Positions 3,791 to 42,676 of a stretch of DNA of 64,000 bases are shown here, piece by piece. The stretch lies in NCBI GenBank assembly GCA_964304625.1, contig OZ199840.1, forward strand, positions 4,068,490 to 4,132,489, written 5' to 3'. The first letter of the stretch is position 1; each line of letters opens with the position of its first letter. The translations under genes and the position numbers were made by a program. The stretch comes from Kudoa neothunni. Its lineage: Eukaryota > Animalia > Cnidaria. The notes under the pieces are model-generated. The model was not told the origin of the DNA, did no database searches, and was given only the letters and a program-made list of their open reading frames with translations.

Positions 3791-4243
3791 ATTTTAACTG
3801 GAATAACGTAAAATAATTAAATAAAAACAAATTTAACATCATCATTTTAATTTTAAAAAAAGAATATCATGGAAAAAATTTCATGTAAAAAGTAGGGTTC
3901 AAAAAATTATAAATTAATATTCGAGCGACATCGTGCCCACGTGTTATCTCCATTGTGTTTACAAAAACTTGAAATTTTTCTTATTCTTCGCATATTTAGC
4001 AGATATTCTGCTTAAAATTATTTAAATAATAAGTGAATCTAAGTGCTCTATGTAGACATGAAATTTTCCGACTGTAAGAAAGGCTATTTATTCAGACATA
4101 AATAGGTAAAATATAGATATGACTACTGGTTGTGATATTAAATTAAGTATGTTAGTTTATAAATTTTTTAACGTGTTTTTAAAAAGTAGATAAAATTTTA
4201 TCGCAGAATTCGTATGAAAATTTTAACATAACAAAATTTAATA

Positions 4244-6288
4244 CAGTCGAGATTGGATATTGCGTGACTGGATATTGCGTAATTAGAGATTTTTAAAGTT
4301 ATCCTTTAAAGAGAGAAATTTAGTTTTTTCAAATTGTTATTATCTTATTGTAATGTAAAAATATTTGTTAACAAAAAATTTAAAAAAATTTATTAATACA
4401 AAAAGTCTCGTTATTGCGTGGAAATTTTTTATTGCGTGGTTGTTAGGCGCAGCGTGACTCGTTATTGCGTGGTTTTTTGTGGTCAATTGGTTTAATTCAG
4501 ATAGTGTTTTTTCATTATGTCCCGTGAACAACGCAATATTTCAGAGAAAATGGAAATCATCCATTACTACAATTCAATAAAAACGTTGAAGGGTGCGAAA
4601 TCAATGACAATTTCCAAGTTTAAATTGAGTGGTATAGTAGTCTTCTAATGAATAGTATTGTAAAATCACATTTAAGGTCATTCAACACTTGATAGAATTC
4701 TTTCGCACGAAGATAAATTCAAAAATACAGATATTGAAAGTAAAAGGAAGAGACATTCGGCAGGCAGATTCAAAAATATAGACGATGAAGTGTATGATTG
4801 GTTTGTTAAACAACGGTCGAATGGTAACGTTCTGTCAGGAGATGCCATTATCAAAAAAGCTTCTTATATTGCAAATGAAAACAAAGTTTCCAATTTTAAA
4901 GCCAGCAAGGGATGGCTTGCAGGGTTCAAGTCAAGATATGGGATAGTTTTCAAAAAGTTCCATGGCGAGGCTGCGAGTGCAGATGTTGCATCTGTCGACT
5001 CATGGATTATTGAGAACATTGATTTGATTAGAGCATATAATCCAAAAGACGTTATTAACATCGACGAAACTGCTCTTTATTATGAGCAGTTACAAAATAG
5101 TAGTTACGTTTTAAAGGAGGAAGTCGGGATTAAGGGGAAAAAATTATCCAAAAAAAGGGTGACTGTTTTACTGTCCTCAGCTTTAAATGGGGATAAGTTC
5201 CCATTAGTTGTTATCGGGAAATTTCAAAATCCTAGATGTTTTAAAAGAGTCAAACACCTCCCTTGTGAATATTATGCACAAAAAAGTGCATGGATGACTT
5301 CTAGTATATTTATCGAAATAATGAAAAAGTTTAACCGAAGGATGATAAATCAGAATAGAAAAGTCTTAATTTTGTTGGACCAATGTCCAGGCCATCCAAA
5401 AAATATTGATTGCTTTGAAAATATCAAATTTTTGTTCTTACCTAAAAATACAACTAGTATTTTACAACCCCTTGATTTAGGCATCATTCGCTGCCTTAAA
5501 AGCAGGTACAAAAGTTCAATGACCGAGCGAATGGTTTTATGCGAAGATTCTATCATAAAAAAATATACATTGCTTGACTCAATGATAACATTAACTAAAT
5601 GTTGGGAAAGTATTCCGCCGCAAATTATTATTAATTGCTTTAAAAAATCAAAAATATTTGGAGGTATTAAATAAAATTACGACAATAAAGTTATTATCAG
5701 TTTATAGACCAAGAAGATGTGAGTGAGATACCTCAAATCAGCAACTGTTCTCAAGGTAATATTTAACGTATACGTAATTAATTTTTTCTAGATGAAATCG
5801 AAGATTCAGAAAATATGTTTGATGACGATTATGAAGCAACATGCGAGGAAGAAAATAATGAGGACTTATTGCCCATAAGTGACGAATCTGACGATAGCGA
5901 ATCAATCATTGAAGACATCAAAGTTTCAATTAATCAAATGAAAAATGCAGTGAACGTTCTGAGGGAAGCTTTTATTAAAGAGGATCCGAGGGGATTGTTT
6001 GATTTACATCCCATAATGGACCGAGTTTTAAAAATATCAAGAGAAAGATTCCGACAAACTAAAATTACAAGCTTTTTCGACAAAATTTGATAAATCACAT
6101 TTCATTTAATTAAATAATATATTTATATATAAAAATTTGATTTTCACTAATTGGCATCGGACGTAAACACGAAAAAATCATATTTTATAGTACACTGCGC
6201 ACGCAAAGGTCTGGATATTGCGTAAAAATTTTTTATTGCGTGGGTTTTTGTTGGTCCCAGAAACCCACGCAATATCCAATCTCGACTG
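4244..6288 (+). mobile_element. Full-length Tigger/pogo (Tc1/mariner superfamily) DNA transposon, 2045 bp, apparently intact
   Basis: Perfect 23-bp TIRs CAGTCGAGATTGGATATTGCGTG (4244-4266; reverse complement 6266-6288). TA TSD on both sides (4242-43, 6289-90). Subterminal TATTGCGT repeats at both ends. Confidence 0.97.
4517..6090 (+). CDS. Tigger/pogo transposase, 4 exons (4517-4631, 4677-5663, 5708-5755, 5792-6090), 482 aa
   Basis: Three GT-AG phase-1 introns (45, 44, 36 nt) join the pieces into a stop-free 1449-nt CDS. Domains in order: psq-type HTH (HSTLDRIL), CENP-B HTH (VYDWF..ASKGWLAGFKSRYGI), DD31D triad (NIDET / LLDQC / QPLDLG), acidic tail, C-terminal PIP-box-like QTKITSFF. Confidence 0.88.
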
Positions 6289-7439
6289 TATTGTTTAAAT
6301 TTCGATCTTAATTTTTTAAAATTATTTACTTTTTCTAAAAAAATCATGCACTGTTATTTTAGTTATGATATAAACTATAAATTATAGTAATCGTCGAAAT
6401 CTTATAAAGTGGATTTTTATGATGTTATAGATAATCAATTGTGGATAATATGTATAGTTCAAAGTTTTTGTTATGCCTAATCTGTTTGACTATATATTAA
6501 TAATCTAACATTAAAATAAGCATTTATTTTTAATATCTGAACTTGTGATAATATAATTTTTTGTCTGAATATTAATATACAATGATCAAAGCACCATAAA
6601 TTTTATATTGGGATTTTGAGTTTATATTGCCGAAATTCATATCGTTTACATAACATCTCTGTTTAAACGAATATATAAAAAAGATTATACAACTAAAATT
6701 TATTCCTTCCTTTAGTAAGATAAAGAAGTTAAAATATTTTCAATTTTTAGATCGAATTGGGGCGTTACCGAGGTGATTTTTATAATTAATGTATCGATTA
6801 AAATTTTAAAATCATTATTATTAACCAAAAAAAGTCATAATTCTCTTAAAAACTTTATTTTGGTATAACACAAGATGAATAGAGCACGATGTCGCTCGAA
6901 TGAGAATTTATCAATTATTTAAGGTGAAATCGTACACTCAGTATTTTTTTATTAAAAAAATTGTAAAAAAACTTCGAATAACAGGATGCAACGTTGATGT
7001 TTATAAAGAGTACAATGTTTATGTTTACTGACTAATTTTTAAGTTTCGATGCTTACATTTAGATTAAAATGATCTTAAAAATATTATTAATAGATAACTA
7101 AACAAGAATGTGTCGAATATGCATGATGTGAATAAAACTTGAAGTACAAGCGAACGTAATTGAATTAAACGTGCTTCCGACCTATTCCGATTCGAGAAAA
7201 CCTGAGAATTTTGAATTATTAGATAGCGCGATAGAGGTATAAAATGCTCCGACTTTTTTTCATCGGTAATGTAAAAATATAACATTATAACGCTGCTTAT
7301 TGAGTTTTTCCTGGTGTGGAATAAATATGTTAAAATTTTCTCGTTATTTCATGGCTTAATTGAAGTATTCTCTGGTTGTACGCCAAAAATAAAAAATAAT
7401 TTTTTCAATCATCAATTTTATGTCTTTTGTACGCAAAAA

Positions 7440-13574: not shown

Positions 13575-16500
13575 CCCTTCCGGTACCAACTGGGGTATTT
13601 AAGTGACCCCATATTATCTATTTTGTTTCTAAATCCAAAAATCAGCTTCTGATAGTCTTCAAAATTTCAGAATACCTCAATTACTATTATTTCGATATTT
13701 TGAGGAAAATATTTTTTACAATATAATTAAATCTAATGAATAGATTCAAAAATAATACTAGAGTTAATTTTTAATGCATCGGATTAGTTTTCTAATGTTA
13801 CATATTTGTTTTATAAATATCAAAAATAGCTTTATCACCCCGAAAATTTGATAATATCCGTTCTATTATATGAAAAAATGGTGCGCCTTTCTAAATATTA
13901 CCGCCTCGCGGATTAACGAGGATTAATCCGATTACGCCACGCGCTTAACATTTCTTGTGGATATTGAGGTAGCAATTGTTAAATAACTTTTTTTGAGACA
14001 TCGGTAATATTTAGTATGAGACTAGACCAAACCATTGATGATGTTGAAAAACTTATTGAGGATTCTTCTTCTGTAGATAATGATAGTTGCTCAGAATACG
14101 AAATATCTGAATCAGATGATTGTGTTATTAGTAATATAGATAGTGATGAAGATTTCCAAAGTGACGTTAAATTTTCTCAAGAAAACCCGAATAATGATTC
14201 TATTTTTTCTTCCCCGTCTGGTCTTGAGTGGTCCAAAAGAATTTGTTCGAAAACGAAAACTAAATCACACAACATCGTTACTTCATCCTCAGGCATTTTA
14301 GATGAGGCAAACAATATAACGTCCATTTTTTATGCCTTTGAATTGTTTATGTCGGATGATATAATTAATGAGATAGTAAAATACAGTAACAAGTACTGCG
14401 AAGAAACTAACCCAGAGACACACACGACAATAACTAAAAATGAAATAAAAGCATTTATAGGCATATTAATCGCTGCTGGGAGTTCAAATGGTAAGATGCT
14501 TGCTCATAGGAATATGTGGGATGGTAGTCCATTATTCAAACAATTATTCTTCCCCACAGTGATGTCCAGAAACAGATTCACTTATATTTATAGAAAAATC
14601 CGTTTTGACGATAAAGCAAATAGAATTTATCGGTTTCAAATTACAAACGACAAATTCGAACCTTGCCGCCAAATTTTCGATCTGTTTAATGAAAATTGCT
14701 TGAAATATTATTCACCAGGCACGCATATTACAGTGGATGAAAGGTTAGTAAGGTTTAGGGGTAAATGTCCGTTTCGGGTATACATGAAGAGCAAGCCCGG
14801 ACGATTCGGGATCAAACTTTGGGTGGCTGCAGACGTAGAAACGTCATACCTATTAAACATTCAACCGTATACTGGGAAGATCGGTGGAACAAGGGAAATA
14901 AATCAGGCTGAAAATGTTGTCACAAGACTTGTCTCTCCATTTTATAGAACTGGCCGAGGAGTGACCGTAGACAACTTTTTTACATCCGTTTCTTTAGCCA
15001 CGAAACTCTTCAAAGAGAACCTGGCATTGACAGGGACAATTAGGTCGAATAAACGCGATATCCCCAAAGAATTTTTAAAATCGCCACGCCGAGAGGTTTT
15101 CTCCTCTCTGTTCGGGTTTTCTGGTCATCTTTCACTTTCTTCCTATGTACCCAAAAAGAACTATGCGGTCAATATATTGTCTACCGAATTTCATGATTCT
15201 TCAACAGAAGGCACATATAGAAAAAGACCAACGGTGATTCTTCACTATAACAAAACCAAAGGTGGTGTTGATAATGGGGATAAAATGACCCAGTCATACT
15301 CCTGTTCGCGACCTACTCGTAGATGGCCACTGAAGATTTTCATGGAGATCATTGATATGGCTGCGTTGAACGCATATATTATTTGGATCCAAAAAAATTC
15401 TGATTGGAAAAAAAAATGATCGTAGCAAGCTTCAGAAATTTATTCGCGAGCTTGCTATAGAATTGGCAATACCCAATGTAGCATATCGTCGTGAGAATTC
15501 CCATACTCTTCAATCTCACATAAAGTATGGTTTCCAATTTTTTGAAATCTCTACCAATAATGACGATTTGACGATGTCTGAATCAAATTCCACTCAGCAA
15601 TCAAAGAGAAATAGATGCCATTTTTGTCCTCGGAATAAGGATAAAAAATCCAGCCTGAGATGTTTCAACTGCCTCAAGTTTGTTTGCATAAAACATAGAG
15701 TAAAAAGAAATATTATTTATTGTTTGGATTGTACCGATTCTTTGGAATAAATCGTGTTAATATATTTTTTTATTCGGCATATGGTTGCAGATTATAAATT
15801 ATACACAAATTTTCACTAGTAATTGAGTGCGATGTGTAATTCATTTTACGATCTCTAATGCATTATCATTTATGACATATACAATTTTGGTCTATTATAA
15901 TAAATAAATTCTACCCAAGGCTCAACGGATTCACAATTTTTGAATTTATACACAGTCATGCCATTTGGGAGAAAAAATATCGGCCTGTTGAAAAAACGAA
16001 TAAAATTAACCTCGCTACAGAGGAAAGAATAATTTTGTTTACAAAATAATTCTCTACTTTGAGAAATTTTACCAAATATGACTCGTAAAATTAAGAAAAT
16101 ATCTACATAAAAGTAAATATTCTAATTTCTGTTTTCGCTACTATTTTGCGAATTTCAAAAATAATAAAATAATGACAAGGCGAAAGTGATTTTGTTGTAC
16201 AAATAAATATTAAAAATAATTACGTACAAATATGACAGATATGTTGAATATTATTTTTGGTGCCTTAAACACTGATGCTCAAATAATGCAAACTGAAGTC
16301 ACTGCGCCATTCATTGTTTAAAAATATTATCATTTTGTGTATTATTCCATGGATGTAACTATTGACACGGCAAATAATATTTAGAGGTCACTAATTTTGG
16401 CTATATTTAATTATTTATATCACATCGCTTCGCTTTTGCCTGTCAGAAATAATTAAATAGAGCAGATTTTAAACGATTAAATCTATACAAAGTTTGTGAG

Positions 16501-24286: not shown

Positions 24287-27200
24287 AAAATATAACCCAA
24301 AAGCACCATTCGAGAAGCCTTTGATATCGATTATTATAGCTGTTTGCAACCGTAAGTTATTAGGATAACTTTTAATGTGCTTTCCTTTAAACATGTCGTT
24401 TAAATTGATATATATTTAAATAACTTAAGTCTGTATAACGCAGTATCTATTGATTCGGTTTATTTCCGTATATTATGCAACCAATTTAAAAATCGCATTT
24501 TGTAAAGGGTTCACAAAATATGCATTTAGATATATTACGACAGTATTTTTTCTAGTGATATATTAAAATTTTGTCAAAGAACATGTATTTACATGGACTA
24601 ATATTAAAATTCTATTCAAAAAAATAGCATTTCAAAGGCTAGGGCAGGGGTCAGAAACCTATGACTCGCGAGTCAGATATGAGTCTTTTGGTGGCTTCAT
24701 CTGGCTGACAGACAAATGTACTATTATAAAAAAATGTTTCGTTAGACTACTTAGTCTATATGTGAAACGATGACAAGACTAGATTTGAAAATCAGTTCGC
24801 AGTCATTTCATCGAGTAATTGTCCAAAATGTCGTTGTGCCTTTCTACTTATCTATCAATGTCATCGGCAACGCATACGAGGCAGAGGCACCGTCCAAGTG
24901 GGGTTGCCGTATTTTGATCTCAAAAGTAGGACTGATTTGGGCTTATGTAAAAGAGTTCACATAACGTCTTATCGTGAGCTCAGAAAGTAAACTTCCTTTG
25001 TTTCAGCTGCGTTTTTAGTCTACAAATATTAGAGCCCTTTTCTAGGAAAATGGCTAAAAGAAAAAGGGGAAATGATTATCGAGCCTCAGCGGGAATGGAC
25101 AGAGGAATTTGCCTTCGTAGAGAGAGCGAGTCCCGCAGTATGTCTAATATGCACTGATAAAACTTAATCTATGTAAGGATCAAATAGAAAGCGACAGTTC
25201 GATCTACTACATTTGCATCAAAATATCCTGCGGGGATAACAGGAAGAAAGCAGTTCAAGAGCTAATATCAAGAGTGAAAGCTAGTCAGCCGCAACTCCCC
25301 GTTTGGGCCAAACAAGTCGACCGGAATTTGGCTTACTTTGAGGGCGGTTTAGAAATTATGAGAAACAGAAAGCCTTTCACGGATGAGGAGTATGTCAAAA
25401 CATTCATGATTGCGTTTGCCGATGAACTTTTTGGCGATTTCTCGGATAGGGAATAGATAATTAAACGAATAAAAGGCGTCTATGTCGGCAAGAACTAATC
25501 ATGATCGTTCCGTCATGACGTTAAATCAAATCGAGGCCACGCAAGTGAGGGACACAAATGCAACATTATTTTTATCTCTTGTTTTGGATGATTCAATAGA
25601 CGTAAACAGTTTATCCCAGCTCAACGTGGCTGCAAGTTACGTTGTCGGAGAAACACTACATGGGGAAATTCTTGCAGTTTTGCCTACGAATGGGACACCA
25701 AGAGGAAGATATATTCAAGTCCTTCACTGAGTTCGCTAAAGAAAAAAATCTATCGATAGATAAACTTGTTTCGGTGTGTAATGATGGCACTCCATGCATA
25801 GTGAGGAAAAAAGAGAATTCGTAGCTCCTCTTTGTGAATATGAAAAATGGTGCCTTCTAAGTTTTTGATGAATCGTCCATTAGGAGGCTCTTCGTGCTCA
25901 GGTGTGTGCCGAACAGCCTGGTGAGGTGATGTCGTTGGTCATCTATATTGTTGCTCGAGCTTTAAAAGATCGTCAGTTTAAAACACTGTTGGATGAAGTT
26001 GGGAATAATTATCCTCGTCTGTTTCTGCACAGCAACGTGCTTAGGTGGTCAAGGGGTAAGTGCTCAGTCGTTTCGCGGCTCGTGTGGATGAAATCTAAAA
26101 TTTTCTAAGATTTAAAAATGTCGAGCGGCCTGAGTTAGCCGACATTGAGTGACTCCTGAAGTTCTACTATCTCATGGATATTTCTGAATATCTAATCCAG
26201 CTCAGTGTGAAAATGCTAGGCGTTTGAAGTACATTCTTATCTCTGCAACAAGCAATGTTTGTATTTAAAAACATGCTAGAACTAGAAATTCTAAAAAGCG
26301 ATAACGAGAGTGTGAGAATGATGTGGCTCAACATACAAAGTTACTAAAATGTTAAACATGATATTTGTTGCATCCAAAACGGATGGATTAAGACAAAAAT
26401 GAGAAAACCGTGTTCTTTAGAGCTTTAACTAAAAATACCGTATTTCAGTATACTCTCAAACCCAATAACTAACACAATTATTCCGTAATTTTTGTAAATT
26501 TACTTTAAATAAGTTTATAATGCATTGGCTAAATTACACATAATGTTCATCCAATCGGTGATTTTGGGGAGGTCTCGATTCTTTATAATACGATGCAATC
26601 AAACAAAAAAATTTTTACGTTAGAGAATATTGATAAGATTATAGACTTGGATCATGGTTTTTTTCGCAATGACCTTGAATATACAATAAAAACAATGCAA
26701 AATTTGGGTCTTATGAAGAGTTATTCAAAATGTTTTTGTGGCGGTCAAATGTTTCTAGTTAAGAGAAAAGACGTTGATGATGGTTATCAATACAAATGTA
26801 TTTCATGCAACAAAAAAACTTCGATACAACAAGGAACTATTTTTGAAATTTCTCGATTTCCTTTGTGGAAAATTTTTATTTTTATAGTAACGGTAATCCA
26901 ACATCCAACAATGACGTACGGCGATATTCGTAAACACACTAAAATTTCTTCAAACTCCACCATAAATTATTGTAAAAACGTCATTACTGATTTTATGGCA
27001 TCTAAACTAGATGAGGAATTTTCTAAAATAGGCGGGAAGGATGTTGTAGTACAAATAGATGAGACCGCTATATCAAAAAGGAAGTTCAACGTTGGAAGAA
27101 TTCTTCGGAATCAATATTATTGGATGGTGGGAGGAATAGACGAAGACGGAAATTTCTTTTTGAAAATAACGCAAAAAAGAAATAAGGATATTCTAAAAAT

Positions 27201-30200
27201 AATAAGTATTGAGAATGTAGAGGAAGAGTCAACTATTTGGACCGATGGTTGGAAAGGTTACAACAGTTTGAAGGATCTAGGTTTTGTTCACGGTACCGTG
27301 ATCCATAAAAGAAGGTTTGTTTCTATTGAGGCGGTCCATACTAACAAAATAGAAGCTACATGGGGGGCTTTTAAAATAAAATATAGAAACGCCAAAAATA
27401 AAACCCCAGAAACACTTCCTAACATGTTGTTGACTTCATATTTCGAAGAAAATATAGTGGAAAAGAATTGTCGACTTTATTTAAATATATAATGGTTTTT
27501 AAGTAGTAACAATTTATTTTTCCTACATTTTACGAGGTGTTTCATTTTTCCCGATTGGATGCACGGTCAATGTAATTTAGCCCATATATTAATAAAAGTG
27601 TGCCATATCCATGTTCTCAATAAGCATGGCTGACACTTATTCTTAGTAAGACTCTGCGTACCATTGAGAATAGTTATTAAACTTATATTATTATATGGAA
27701 AAACATTAACTTAATCTTTTATCAAAAGTTTTATACAACAAATTTTTTTTATGTATTTTATTTAGGCAGTGGCTATCGCTACGGATCCGTTTAATCCGTA
27801 TGCGGGGGTTGTCTATTGCTACGGGAGGGAATAACTCCAAATCTACAAACTCACATAAAATTTGAAATTTATATTTGTAATCAATGATTTTTGGCCTAAC
27901 ATAATTAACTGTTTTGGAGAAAATTTGAGCTATTGAAAAATATAACATTAATGTAAGGAGTTTTGGATTAAAAAATAGCTTTAGTTCATCTTTTTACCAT
28001 TTAATAAAATTAATATGCAAAATTGTTTGTGTAAAATCGGTTAATAAGGATAATACTCAAATGAAATAAACATTTTTTACTTCTTTTAATATGATCGTGC
28101 GCCAAGAAACGTTTTTAATTTTGTGGCAACTGCTCACCTATTTTAAATGGACGGCATATTTATATAATTTGAAAATTTAAAATAGTTAGGTAATAATTAT
28201 TAGTTTACGAAAAATATTAAGCGCATGAGTTAGAAATATTGTATTAAATTGATTATGATCAATTGTTTTGTTCAAATAAAACATTTTTTAATAAACAGTT
28301 AGTAATTTAAATAGTTAGTATATTATTTTTTCATATGTTTTTATTCTAGAAAAAGAAATGACAGCCTACTTTCTTTAGGTCATCCGATGGTTTTCACTCT
28401 CAGTGGGAATGATAGTCCTAACTAATATTTGGTAACATTTTAATAATTTTATTTCAAGTATCAGTTGTTATTTCGTATTATTTTGGATTAACTTCCTTTG
28501 AAATATTTGTATTACACAAAGTTTACTGGTAAAAAATGGGTATTTTAACCCTTTCGTTCCCAAATTTTTTTTTTACATGAAATCTTTTTGTGTAAAATTA
28601 ATGATAAAATTATATATAATTTAAAATTTATACTTTAAACAAAAATTATTTAACGACAATTTAAAGCTCCTTTTAATCTGTCCACCAAGGTGGACAATGG
28701 GTATTTATTATTTATTTGCCTCGGCATATTCGCGCATTGGTTCCGCGCAAAAAAAGAAAACATAAGAAAATTAAAATTTTAAAATATTTTTACAGCATAT
28801 TATGAAAGTTATAGAAACAATTCCTTTCTTTCTTAAGACAACAAAATGAATGGCATTTCATACATTTAAATTTGGTCTTTTTTGACAAACCCTACATCTT
28901 GAATGTGTTGTCATTATTTCAGGAAAATGTCCAAATATGTCAAGACAGATTTCATCACTCAATGGATTAGACCTCGTTCTTTTTTTATCGACGTTGGCGT
29001 AATTTTTTCCGCTATCAGTTTGATTAAGTGAGGGTCTACCACGTTTTGATTGTGTAGTCATTGCTTGATGGTAGATAAGACTTTCACTAACTTTTAAAGA
29101 AAAATCCAACGAATCCATTACTTCATTCTTATCGGTGCGTCTCACGGAACAATTTCGTTTGTAAAGTAGCCAAGCGTTAACCATGCATGTGTTTAGAGCC
29201 CAAAAAAAGGTTCTAAAATAATACTTTCTGCGCTTATGTTTCATAACATAAAGTGACATGAGCATATCGGATAGGTCAACCCCGCCCATATTTTGGTTAT
29301 ATTCCTTAACCACAGCTGGACAAGAAACTTCCACCATTTTTTTCTTAGACCTATCGAATCTTTTTGACATTGAGACTGGCTCAATCGAGGAATGAGTAGA
29401 TGAAAGAGTGACAACTGATCCATCAAACCATCTTGTTATCGATATTCCATTACCAGAGTCATGAGCAGAATCATACTAGCCACGTCCTTCTTTTTTTAAA
29501 TCTTTGTCACTACTCAACGGACAACCCTTAACTCTGTTAATACGTATCGTACCAACAGAATAGATATTTCTTCGTTTTAAGAAGATTTGGAACGGGATAG
29601 ATGTAAACCAGTTGTCGAAATAAGTGAAATATGGTTTGCTCAGCGGTAGACTTTCGCACAACTTTTGGTGACGGCGGATTTTCGTCCATCGTAAAGATGA
29701 AAATCGTAAACCAAACCATTAACACCACATCTCGCAAACATTTTAAACCCCCATTTCGTTGGTTTATTGGGGACGTATTGCTTGGCCTTATATTTGCCTT
29801 TAAACGGGATAATCTGTTCGTCAATTGAATGGTTTCTTTCGGGCTCAATCTTTAGAAACGATGCTCTAACAAAATCTAACAAAGGTCTAATTTTAGCGAA
29901 TTTGTCGTATTTGGGCGAATTAGGATCCGTGATAATTTTAGAGTTATCCACGAAGTGCAAGTATTTATATATTTGCTCAAAACGGTTCCTTGAGAAAGCC
30001 TCGGAAACAAGGGGATAGTTCATAAGTTTCGACCAATAACATCGATACCTCGGCATTCTTACTATCCCCATAATAATTAAAATCCCCAGATATTTTTTTA
30101 TTTCCATAATATCAGTTTTGAAATTGGAATTTTGTTGAGTAGCGTACAGATTTGATTCATATGCAATATTCGATATCAACTCATCCGTGAAGAAAAATTT

Positions 30201-41159: not shown

Positions 41160-42602
41160 TTTTATTCAAAAAAAGATGAACTTATTAGTTCAAACGTTTC
41201 AATTGACCGAATACGAGTTTTACGGGGAAAATACACTCAGGTTGAAGGTGAGTTGTATAATTGGATAGTTAGCATGCGAGAAAAAAAGAAAAACATCTCA
41301 AAATTTATAATTAAAGAAAAGGCGATGCTTATAGCAAATGATCTTCTAGCCAAAGATTTTCATTACAGTAGTGGGTGGTTTTGTAATTTAAAAAACGGTT
41401 CAGTTTGGAAAATCAAAAGCTTCACGGTGAGGCAGGTAGTGCGAATGTGATGGCAACAAATGAATGGATTGGACAATATTCGGATGTATTAAGTAATTAC
41501 AATCATGAAAATATATTTAATCTTGACGAATTTGCTTTTTTTACGAACATCTTCCCACATGTACTTATACAACAAAAGACGAAATCGAAGTGAGGGGTTG
41601 TAAACGATCAAAAAAAAGAGTGACCGTGTTGGTAACTGCATCATTGGTAAGTTTCAAAAGCCACGTTGTTTTAAAGGGGTGAATGATTTCCCTTGCAAAT
41701 ATTTCTCTCAAAAAATGGTTGGATGTCAGCAGGTATTTTCTATGAGATACTAAAAGATTTTGACAATAAATTTTTTCGAGAAAGTAGGAACGTTCTTATG
41801 TTATTAGATCAATACCCTTCTCATCCTCAATCAATTAATTCATTTACAAACATCAAATTATTTTTTCTCCCAAAAAATGCCACCAGCATTGTACGCATTG
41901 TACAGCCAATGGATCTCAGTGTTATTAATAGTCTTAAGGCAAACTACGGAAAAATAATGGCCCAAAATCTTATATTTGACGACGATGCTACAAATATTCT
42001 GAAATACACCATATTAGATTTCCTAAATACATTAAACAATGCTCGGAAACAGTTAATAATTCAGTTATAATAAATTGTTTCAAAAAAGCTCCTATTTTGG
42101 GTAGTGATATTTTTGTTGATTTCGAAATATCTAATATACACACAGAAAAATCATTAATTGATTCGAATTATGAAAATTATGAAATTATTGATGGTATTAA
42201 TTGTTGCTTATCTGATTTGATTATATTAGATGACCTCGATGATGTTGACGTTATGAAAGAGGCTGAAACTGTTCATAATGATACATTTGACAGCTCCAAC
42301 ACAAGAAAATTAAAAAATTCTATATGCACACAAGACTCTAATTTTGATTTGGAAAAAGAAACAACTATAAGCCTCGATCAACACAATTAGAAAGATCTTT
42401 CCAACCGAAAAACCTGCATAGATCACTTATACGAAATATTTAAAAAGCGAGAGAAACAAATTAAAATAGATAGCTATTTCATCAAAAAATACAAGTATTA
42501 TTTGTATTTGCACGTGCGCGAAGCCTCGATATTGCGAGTGGCCTTGCTATTGTGTGGTAAATTGCATTTCCCAAAAAACCTCCCTATATCGAGGCCCTAC
42601 TG
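41160..42602 (+). pseudogene. Decayed Tigger/pogo element (second family), left end lost
   Basis: Frameshifted LYNWI..SSGWF, KLHGEAGSA, FNLDE, LLDQYPSHP, VQPMDLSVI, NCFKK and PIP-like QIKIDSYF. Right TIR ..TATATCGAGGCCCTACTG|TA. Confidence 0.9.
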
Positions 42603-42676
42603 TATGTTCAATTTACAACTCGGGTGAACTCGTGGTCACCTATTAAAGATTAATACTTAATTTTTATATTTTAAAC

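Follow-up and report, generated by a model that had tools for sequence, protein, structure and literature searches.

The stretch of DNA analysed here, referred to below as the window, is 64 kb long and comes from the genome of the myxozoan Kudoa neothunni. At positions 4244–6288 it contains a pogo/Tigger-type DNA transposon of 2,045 bp, recognised by its terminal inverted repeats (TIRs), TA flanks and domains. We consider it probable that this is an autonomous cut-and-paste transposon, with a transposase that would be translatable after the splicing of three introns. The evidence that can be read directly consists of the anatomy of the element, its domains, the conservation of its intron positions and the identity of its copies.

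Anatomy and gene model

The element is bounded by TIRs of 23 nt, at 4244–4266 on the plus strand and 6266–6288 on the minus strand. An earlier sequence-only reading had described these repeats as perfect, which is correct: they are complementary at 23 of 23 positions (100%). They are followed on either side by a TA target-site duplication (unstranded; 4242–4243 on the left and 6289–6290 on the right), and all 11 young copies of the element are TA-flanked. Its ends, its target site and its domains all place the element in the pogo/Tigger group. The closest named database matches to its second exon are annotated as 'Tigger-derived' and 'jerky-like' proteins.

The element contains repeat families, D1–D3. 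In the 64 kb of the window there are 11 instances of the motif TATTGCGT, nine of them within the element, compared with a mean of 2.5 in shuffled sequences. Five are direct repeats within its first 230 nt, in the 5′ untranslated part (4258–4470, plus strand, starting at 4258, 4273, 4412, 4430 and 4463), and three are at the right end, comprising two direct repeats in the 3′ subterminal part (6216–6241, plus strand) and the inverted copy in the TIR. The ninth lies close to the ATG, on the minus strand at 4531–4538, and is thus inverted within exon 1, 15 nt past the start codon. These repeats are probably binding sites for the transposase.

The gene is predicted to consist of four coding pieces separated by three GT-AG introns, all on the plus strand. 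This is the arrangement proposed in the sequence-only reading, and on checking base by base the positions, lengths and phase 1 of the introns were all exact. Exon 1 (4517–4631, 115 nt) is open from its ATG, and has 38 codons plus one nucleotide, encoding the first helices of a predicted CENP-B-type helix-turn-helix (HTH). After intron 1 (4632–4676, 45 nt, phase 1) comes exon 2 (4677–5663), which at 987 nt is the longest, and which encodes the recognition helix of that HTH, the HTH_Tnp_Tc5 domain and the DDE_1 domain. Intron 2 (5664–5707, 44 nt, phase 1) and intron 3 (5756–5791, 36 nt, phase 1) enclose exon 3 (5708–5755), a micro-exon of 48 nt encoding a polar linker. Exon 4 (5792–6090, 299 nt) encodes an acidic stretch, a conserved C-terminal domain and a PIP-type motif, with the stop codon at 6088–6090. 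The four exons add up to 1,449 nt, equivalent to 482 codons plus the stop, and this agrees with the protein of 482 residues claimed previously.

The three donors all start with GTA, and the codons split by the introns are GGT, GAC and GAT. Exons have a GC content of 34% and introns 21%. At the introns the unspliced frames run into stops immediately: retention of intron 1 would give a peptide of 43 residues, and on retention of intron 2 the frame ends after three codons, giving a product that would lack the C-terminal domain and the PIP motif. Frame arithmetic nevertheless gives weak support to these introns, because many GT-AG pairs restore the frame in DNA that is 70% A+T. The three breaks have 20, 2 and 8 of these pairs, respectively, so that intron 2 has just one further frame-restoring pair besides the predicted one.

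Translations, domain scans and database searches were run exon by exon rather than on the joined protein. Using exon 2 alone, Pfam identifies HTH_Tnp_Tc5 (PF03221; E 9e-15) at about 4772–4957 and DDE_1 (PF03184; E 3.7e-37) at about 5150–5641. The catalytic aspartates are at 5063, 5378 and 5474 (exon-2 residues 129, 234 and 266). The last two are separated by 31 residues, within the spacing of about 30–36 expected of pogo/Tigger transposons, which bears out the proposed DD31D signature. Pfam gave no match with exon 1 alone or with exon 4 alone. Exon 1 does match, weakly and at the expected place, the N-termini of relatives that bear a CENP-B_N domain (hhalign P 0.0015), and it is 66% and 59% identical to the first exons of the two foreign homologues described below (L031 and L032). 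This first HTH is cut by intron 1, and its helix-3 portion, encoded by the beginning of exon 2, can be aligned with relatives. Of the two HTH domains in the sequence-only reading, the second is therefore clear, and the first is likely. At the end of exon 4 is the sequence QTKITSFF (6055–6078), followed by three residues and the stop. It fits the PIP consensus perfectly and the motif is conserved in relatives, as would be expected from the terminal PIP-like motif noted earlier.

The predicted splicing, protein function, PCNA binding and current activity of the element can be put together as follows. Judging from conservation, transcription of the transposase gene would start inside the element, and the host spliceosome would remove the mini-introns of 45, 44 and 36 nt, the mRNA being translatable only after this. 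Translation would then produce a DDD transposase having, again on the basis of conservation, a split CENP-B-type HTH, a Tc5-type HTH, a DDE_1 domain, an acidic linker, and a C-terminal domain with a PIP motif. By analogy with pogo and its relatives, this transposase would recognise the TATTGCGT repeats that lie within the TIRs and beside them, and would then cut the element out and insert it again at a TA. The same analogy suggests that the PIP motif, being a PCNA-binding motif, could couple the reaction to replication or repair.

Intron positions in relatives and in the host

The real support for the introns is comparative, and it supports the view that they are real and old. Of the database homologues of exon 2, the nearest (P0001), with 53% protein identity in local alignment, sits on a 1.9-kb contig of another sample (L031). 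The three introns on this contig interrupt the same codons as those of the element, and their phase is identical. They have lengths of 38, 35 and 31 nt, different from those of the element, and show no evident resemblance to them in sequence. The contig also has a micro-exon, in this case of 36 nt, and the encoded protein ends in QKHITEYF. A second foreign homologue (L032), which is decayed and has 48% identity, shares the sites of introns 1 and 2, its intron 1 being 38 nt long. The contigs of two other database homologues (L041 and L042) were uninformative, as one contains adapter sequence and the other represents a different lineage.

All three introns are also found in a second Tigger family of the same genome, here called family B, at 34% identity. 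One copy of it is in the window (41166–42604, plus strand; 34% protein identity to exon 2). This copy is decayed and truncated at its 5′ end, and has intron 2 at 42101–42145 (45 nt) and intron 3 at 42194–42229 (36 nt), both on the plus strand and at the same site and in the same phase as in the element. Between them is a micro-exon of 48 nt, the whole module spanning 42101–42229. Full-length members of family B (L046–L049) also have intron 1, and after its acceptor exon 2 begins at the position where it begins in the element. The intron-1 donor of this family (L045–L049) is AT in three of the four full-length copies and GT in the fourth, a G-to-A state that is also seen in an older layer of the element's own family, with 72% identity.

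Intron position and phase have thus been kept across 34–53% protein identity, and this would require selection on splicing. The three-intron layout therefore appears to be old and common to several related families.

Related families that lack an intron provide a view of the spliced junctions. In the same genome, families C and D (loci L061 and L064, at G000:C1:8040900-8044400 and C3:10055300-10058800, and L063, at G000:C2:2116500-2120200) are without intron 1. Their sequences FNISTISTLNGIL and FKIGYISTLNGIL are uninterrupted at the intron-1 site, and are colinear, residue for residue, with the spliced FKLS-G-HSTLDRIL of the element. At junctions 2 and 3, continuity from DDE_1 to the PIP motif is seen in family D and in the database relatives, with a linker that is itself not alignable; in family D a single frame runs from the catalytic domain through the PIP motif. 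Immediately ahead of the acidic stretch, family C contains one phase-1 intron, which may correspond to intron 3.

Further evidence comes from 15 intronless relatives of 477–561 residues. In these the domain encoded by exon 4 follows DDE_1 in frame, and nearly all of the 15 have a terminus of the form Qxx[ILV]xx[FY][FY]. Because the intronless relatives carry this domain within the DDE_1 ORF, exon 4 belongs to the protein.

K. neothunni is a parasite of tuna. Its published assembly has a size of 40.2 Mb and an N50 of 12.0 Mb, in three chromosomes and a mitochondrial circle, with 30.4% GC and 45.6% repeats, and only a very small number of RNA reads could be mapped to the parasite (PMC12239612). 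The assembly used here comprises four sequences totalling 40,260,978 bases, three large ones of 17.15, 12.04 and 11.05 Mb and one small one, and the window has 29.7% G+C. The 5′ splice signal of myxozoans is reported to be reduced to 'GTa' (PMC13644364), which the three GTA donors of the element fit. Host exons have 36.8% GC and host introns 26.0% (PMC12239612), and the composition of the element's exons (34%) and introns (21%) fits this.

For intron length, K. neothunni is listed at 49 bp (PMC12239612, Table 2). In an unconventional myosin gene and in CCT genes, eight host introns could be placed by means of splice signals and frame, and these have lengths of 49–190 nt. HSP90 and myosin II proved intron-poor and were dropped as gauges of host introns. 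The description of the three introns as host-sized is thus roughly right, in that they are at or just below the lower end of the host range, but all three are shorter than any of the eight placed introns.

Copies of the family and competing readings

There are at least 11 copies of the element in the genome at 98.5–100% identity, and their outer flanks are distinct in 10 of the 11. Eight of these copies (L002–L009) have 2–5 differences from the window copy in about 2,049 nt. The near-identity that the sequence-only reading had proposed to look for is therefore present, and points to very recent movement of the family. Two of the copies, L006 (G000:C2:9460235-9462286) and L010 (9479634-9481687), are 19 kb apart and have identical flanks, but about 10 positions distinguish them, one being the donor-1 base. 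The pair could have arisen by segmental duplication, followed by change or conversion, or could be residual haplotype sequence.

Every exon is open in eight of the 11 young copies. The other three (L007, L009 and L010) have single-base indels, mostly in short homopolymer runs. It is worth adding that a cytosolic-type HSP90 gene in the same genome (L034, G000:C2:9557606-9559127), which is intronless, contains two single-base shifts in A runs, reflecting either an error of the low-coverage assembly or a pseudogene. Given these homopolymer shifts and the low coverage of the assembly, some of the indels in the young copies may likewise be errors. Four young copies have an extra in-frame glycine two residues past the third catalytic aspartate.

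The splice dinucleotides of the young copies are intact except for one variant at donor 1, and decay of these sites is seen in old copies only. To that extent the GT and AG dinucleotides, whose conservation had been put forward as a check, are conserved in the young copies. The variant is a change of G4632 to C, which converts the donor to CT; it is found in six aligned copies, namely four of the 11 young ones together with L013 and L014. In all of the CT-donor copies there is a GT 3 nt upstream, at 4629, use of which keeps the frame and yields one codon fewer.

Among 23 aligned genomic copies, none is without any of the three intron segments. Copies with a continuous ORF lacking the segments, which the sequence-only reading had named as evidence that would tell against it, thus did not appear: the segments are there in 23 of 23. 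Exon 3 is open in 22 of the 23, in one case with an in-frame deletion of 3 nt. In pairwise comparison with older copies, the divergence of the introns is similar to that of untranslated parts and third codon positions, and exceeds that at the first two codon positions.

The older layers of the family have 83–96% and about 72% identity to the element, and there are also deletion derivatives. In all six aligned copies of the 72% layer (L022 and L026–L030), exon 1 contains two in-frame TAA codons and donor 1 reads AT, and in five of the six acceptor 3 reads AA. Because these defects are shared, the progenitor of the layer was evidently already non-coding, and it spread as a passenger. For the same reason, this layer was unusable as a test of the splice sites.

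This behaviour of its relatives raises the question of whether the element itself is coding-dead, with segments that are not removed, or not removed efficiently, and with copies moved in trans by another Tigger family. The genome offers potential sources of such help: a DDE_1 scan found at least 637 candidate Tigger/pogo loci in 40 Mb, belonging to several families, and the shared non-coding defects of the 72% layer indicate that relatives were clearly amplified in trans. The introns of the element are also, as noted above, shorter than the eight placed in host genes. Against this, all exons are open in eight of the 11 young copies and their splice dinucleotides are intact apart from the donor-1 variant. 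In addition, the retention of intron position and phase over 34–53% identity would need selection on splicing. We therefore regard this explanation as unlikely. The claim that the element is autonomous fits a family with 11 near-identical copies, eight having all exons open, as does recent mobility, and the element may still be active.

A second alternative accepts the gene as real and supposes that its main product differs from the one modelled, through use of the donor at 4629, skipping of exon 3, or deliberate retention of intron 2. The GT at 4629 is in frame with the same acceptor, and is the sole option in the CT-donor copies. As exon 3 is symmetric, with 48 nt, the region 5664–5791 could be removed in frame as one unit, and retention of intron 2 would end the frame within three codons with loss of the PIP motif. 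However, exon 3 is open and its protein similar in 22 of 23 copies, with equivalents both in the foreign contig L031 and in family B, and the junction at 4632 matches families C and D residue for residue. These observations favour the full four-exon product, and make a different main product rather improbable.

Finally, domesticated pogo-like genes often have introns (PMC4231638; bioRxiv 10.1101/656579), but the reading of this locus as a domesticated Tigger-derived host gene and not a mobile element is ruled out, to near certainty, by its intact ends, with perfect TIRs and the TA duplications, and by its copy number, with 11 or more almost identical copies, of which ten occupy unrelated loci.

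The reading that we prefer is therefore that of an autonomous transposon whose transposase gene would be spliced.

Known transposons and annotation of the superfamily

The transposase mRNA of Drosophila pogo needs splicing, and contains one intron. The element resembles Drosophila pogo in its TA duplication, short TIRs, DDE_1 core and C-terminal PIP motif, as well as in its predicted splicing; it differs in having three introns and a micro-exon, and in its myxozoan host. A passage of PMC4231638 (citing Warbrick 1998 and Wang 1999) lists for pogo the TA duplication, short TIRs with a motif bound by the transposase, an N-terminal HTH, a DDE_1 domain and a C-terminal motif through which the transposase is reported to bind PCNA.

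The intronless Tigger, Tigger-derived and jerky-like proteins of animals are 33–41% identical to the element over HTH_Tnp_Tc5 and DDE_1, and have the same C-terminal domain. These proteins are encoded by continuous ORFs of 477–561 residues, whereas the element spreads its protein over four exons.

Introns in DNA transposons have been described as rare (bioRxiv 10.1101/656579). The same work describes TLEWI, Tc1-like elements with introns from molluscs, which have TIRs and a transposase ORF in 3–6 exons. Like TLEWI, the element is a DNA transposon of the Tc1/mariner group with TIRs and a multi-exon transposase. Unlike TLEWI, it belongs to the pogo/Tigger family rather than to a Tc1-like one, is found in a different host, and has introns at unrelated positions.

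The P element of Drosophila is a DNA transposon with three introns, in which retention of the last intron leads to a truncated repressor. By comparison, retention of intron 2 in the element would also give a protein truncated at its C-terminus. The two transposases are from unrelated superfamilies, and the retention product of the element is predicted from its sequence. With Tigger families of 0–3 introns, all below 49 bp, one may speculate that intron gain or loss is live in this genome and that splicing might regulate transposition in the manner of the P repressor; we put this forward very tentatively, as an unlikely reading.

No account of multi-intron Tigger elements turned up in searches of the literature, nor did any statement on the gene structure of Tc5. 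In three large surveys of pogo and Tigger elements the word 'intron' is absent. Multi-intron elements of the Tc1/mariner group have already been described, and the new addition is a three-intron Tigger lineage in a myxozoan. A three-intron Tigger leaves the known working of such transposons unchanged. Myxozoans are a group already noted for unusual introns, and the presence of sister families with and without a given intron could be used to study intron turnover and the minimal size of introns in them.

There is also a warning for annotation, as at least one Tigger family in this genome looks young and competent despite its broken ORFs. The open frames of the 150 DDE_1 loci that were scored do not exceed 345 residues, so that no full-length intronless Tigger ORF was seen among them. 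A survey that equates an intact element with a continuous ORF would consequently score the superfamily as dead. The warning in the sequence-only reading, that ORF-based annotation would discard this element as dead, is therefore plausible; the three large surveys never mention introns.

Other Tigger families of the genome have repeated open frames of 293, 288 or 276 residues, which suggests that there are further young families. The window also contains transposases of other types. At 14016–15750 there is an ORF of 467 residues with a full piggyBac-type domain (DDE_Tnp_1_7, E 4e-81), followed 43 nt on by an ORF of 95 residues, and this pair may be a second transposase split by a mini-intron. 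A further transposon type is represented at 26593–27492 by an ORF of 299 residues with an ISXO2/IS1595-like DDE domain (E 1e-11).
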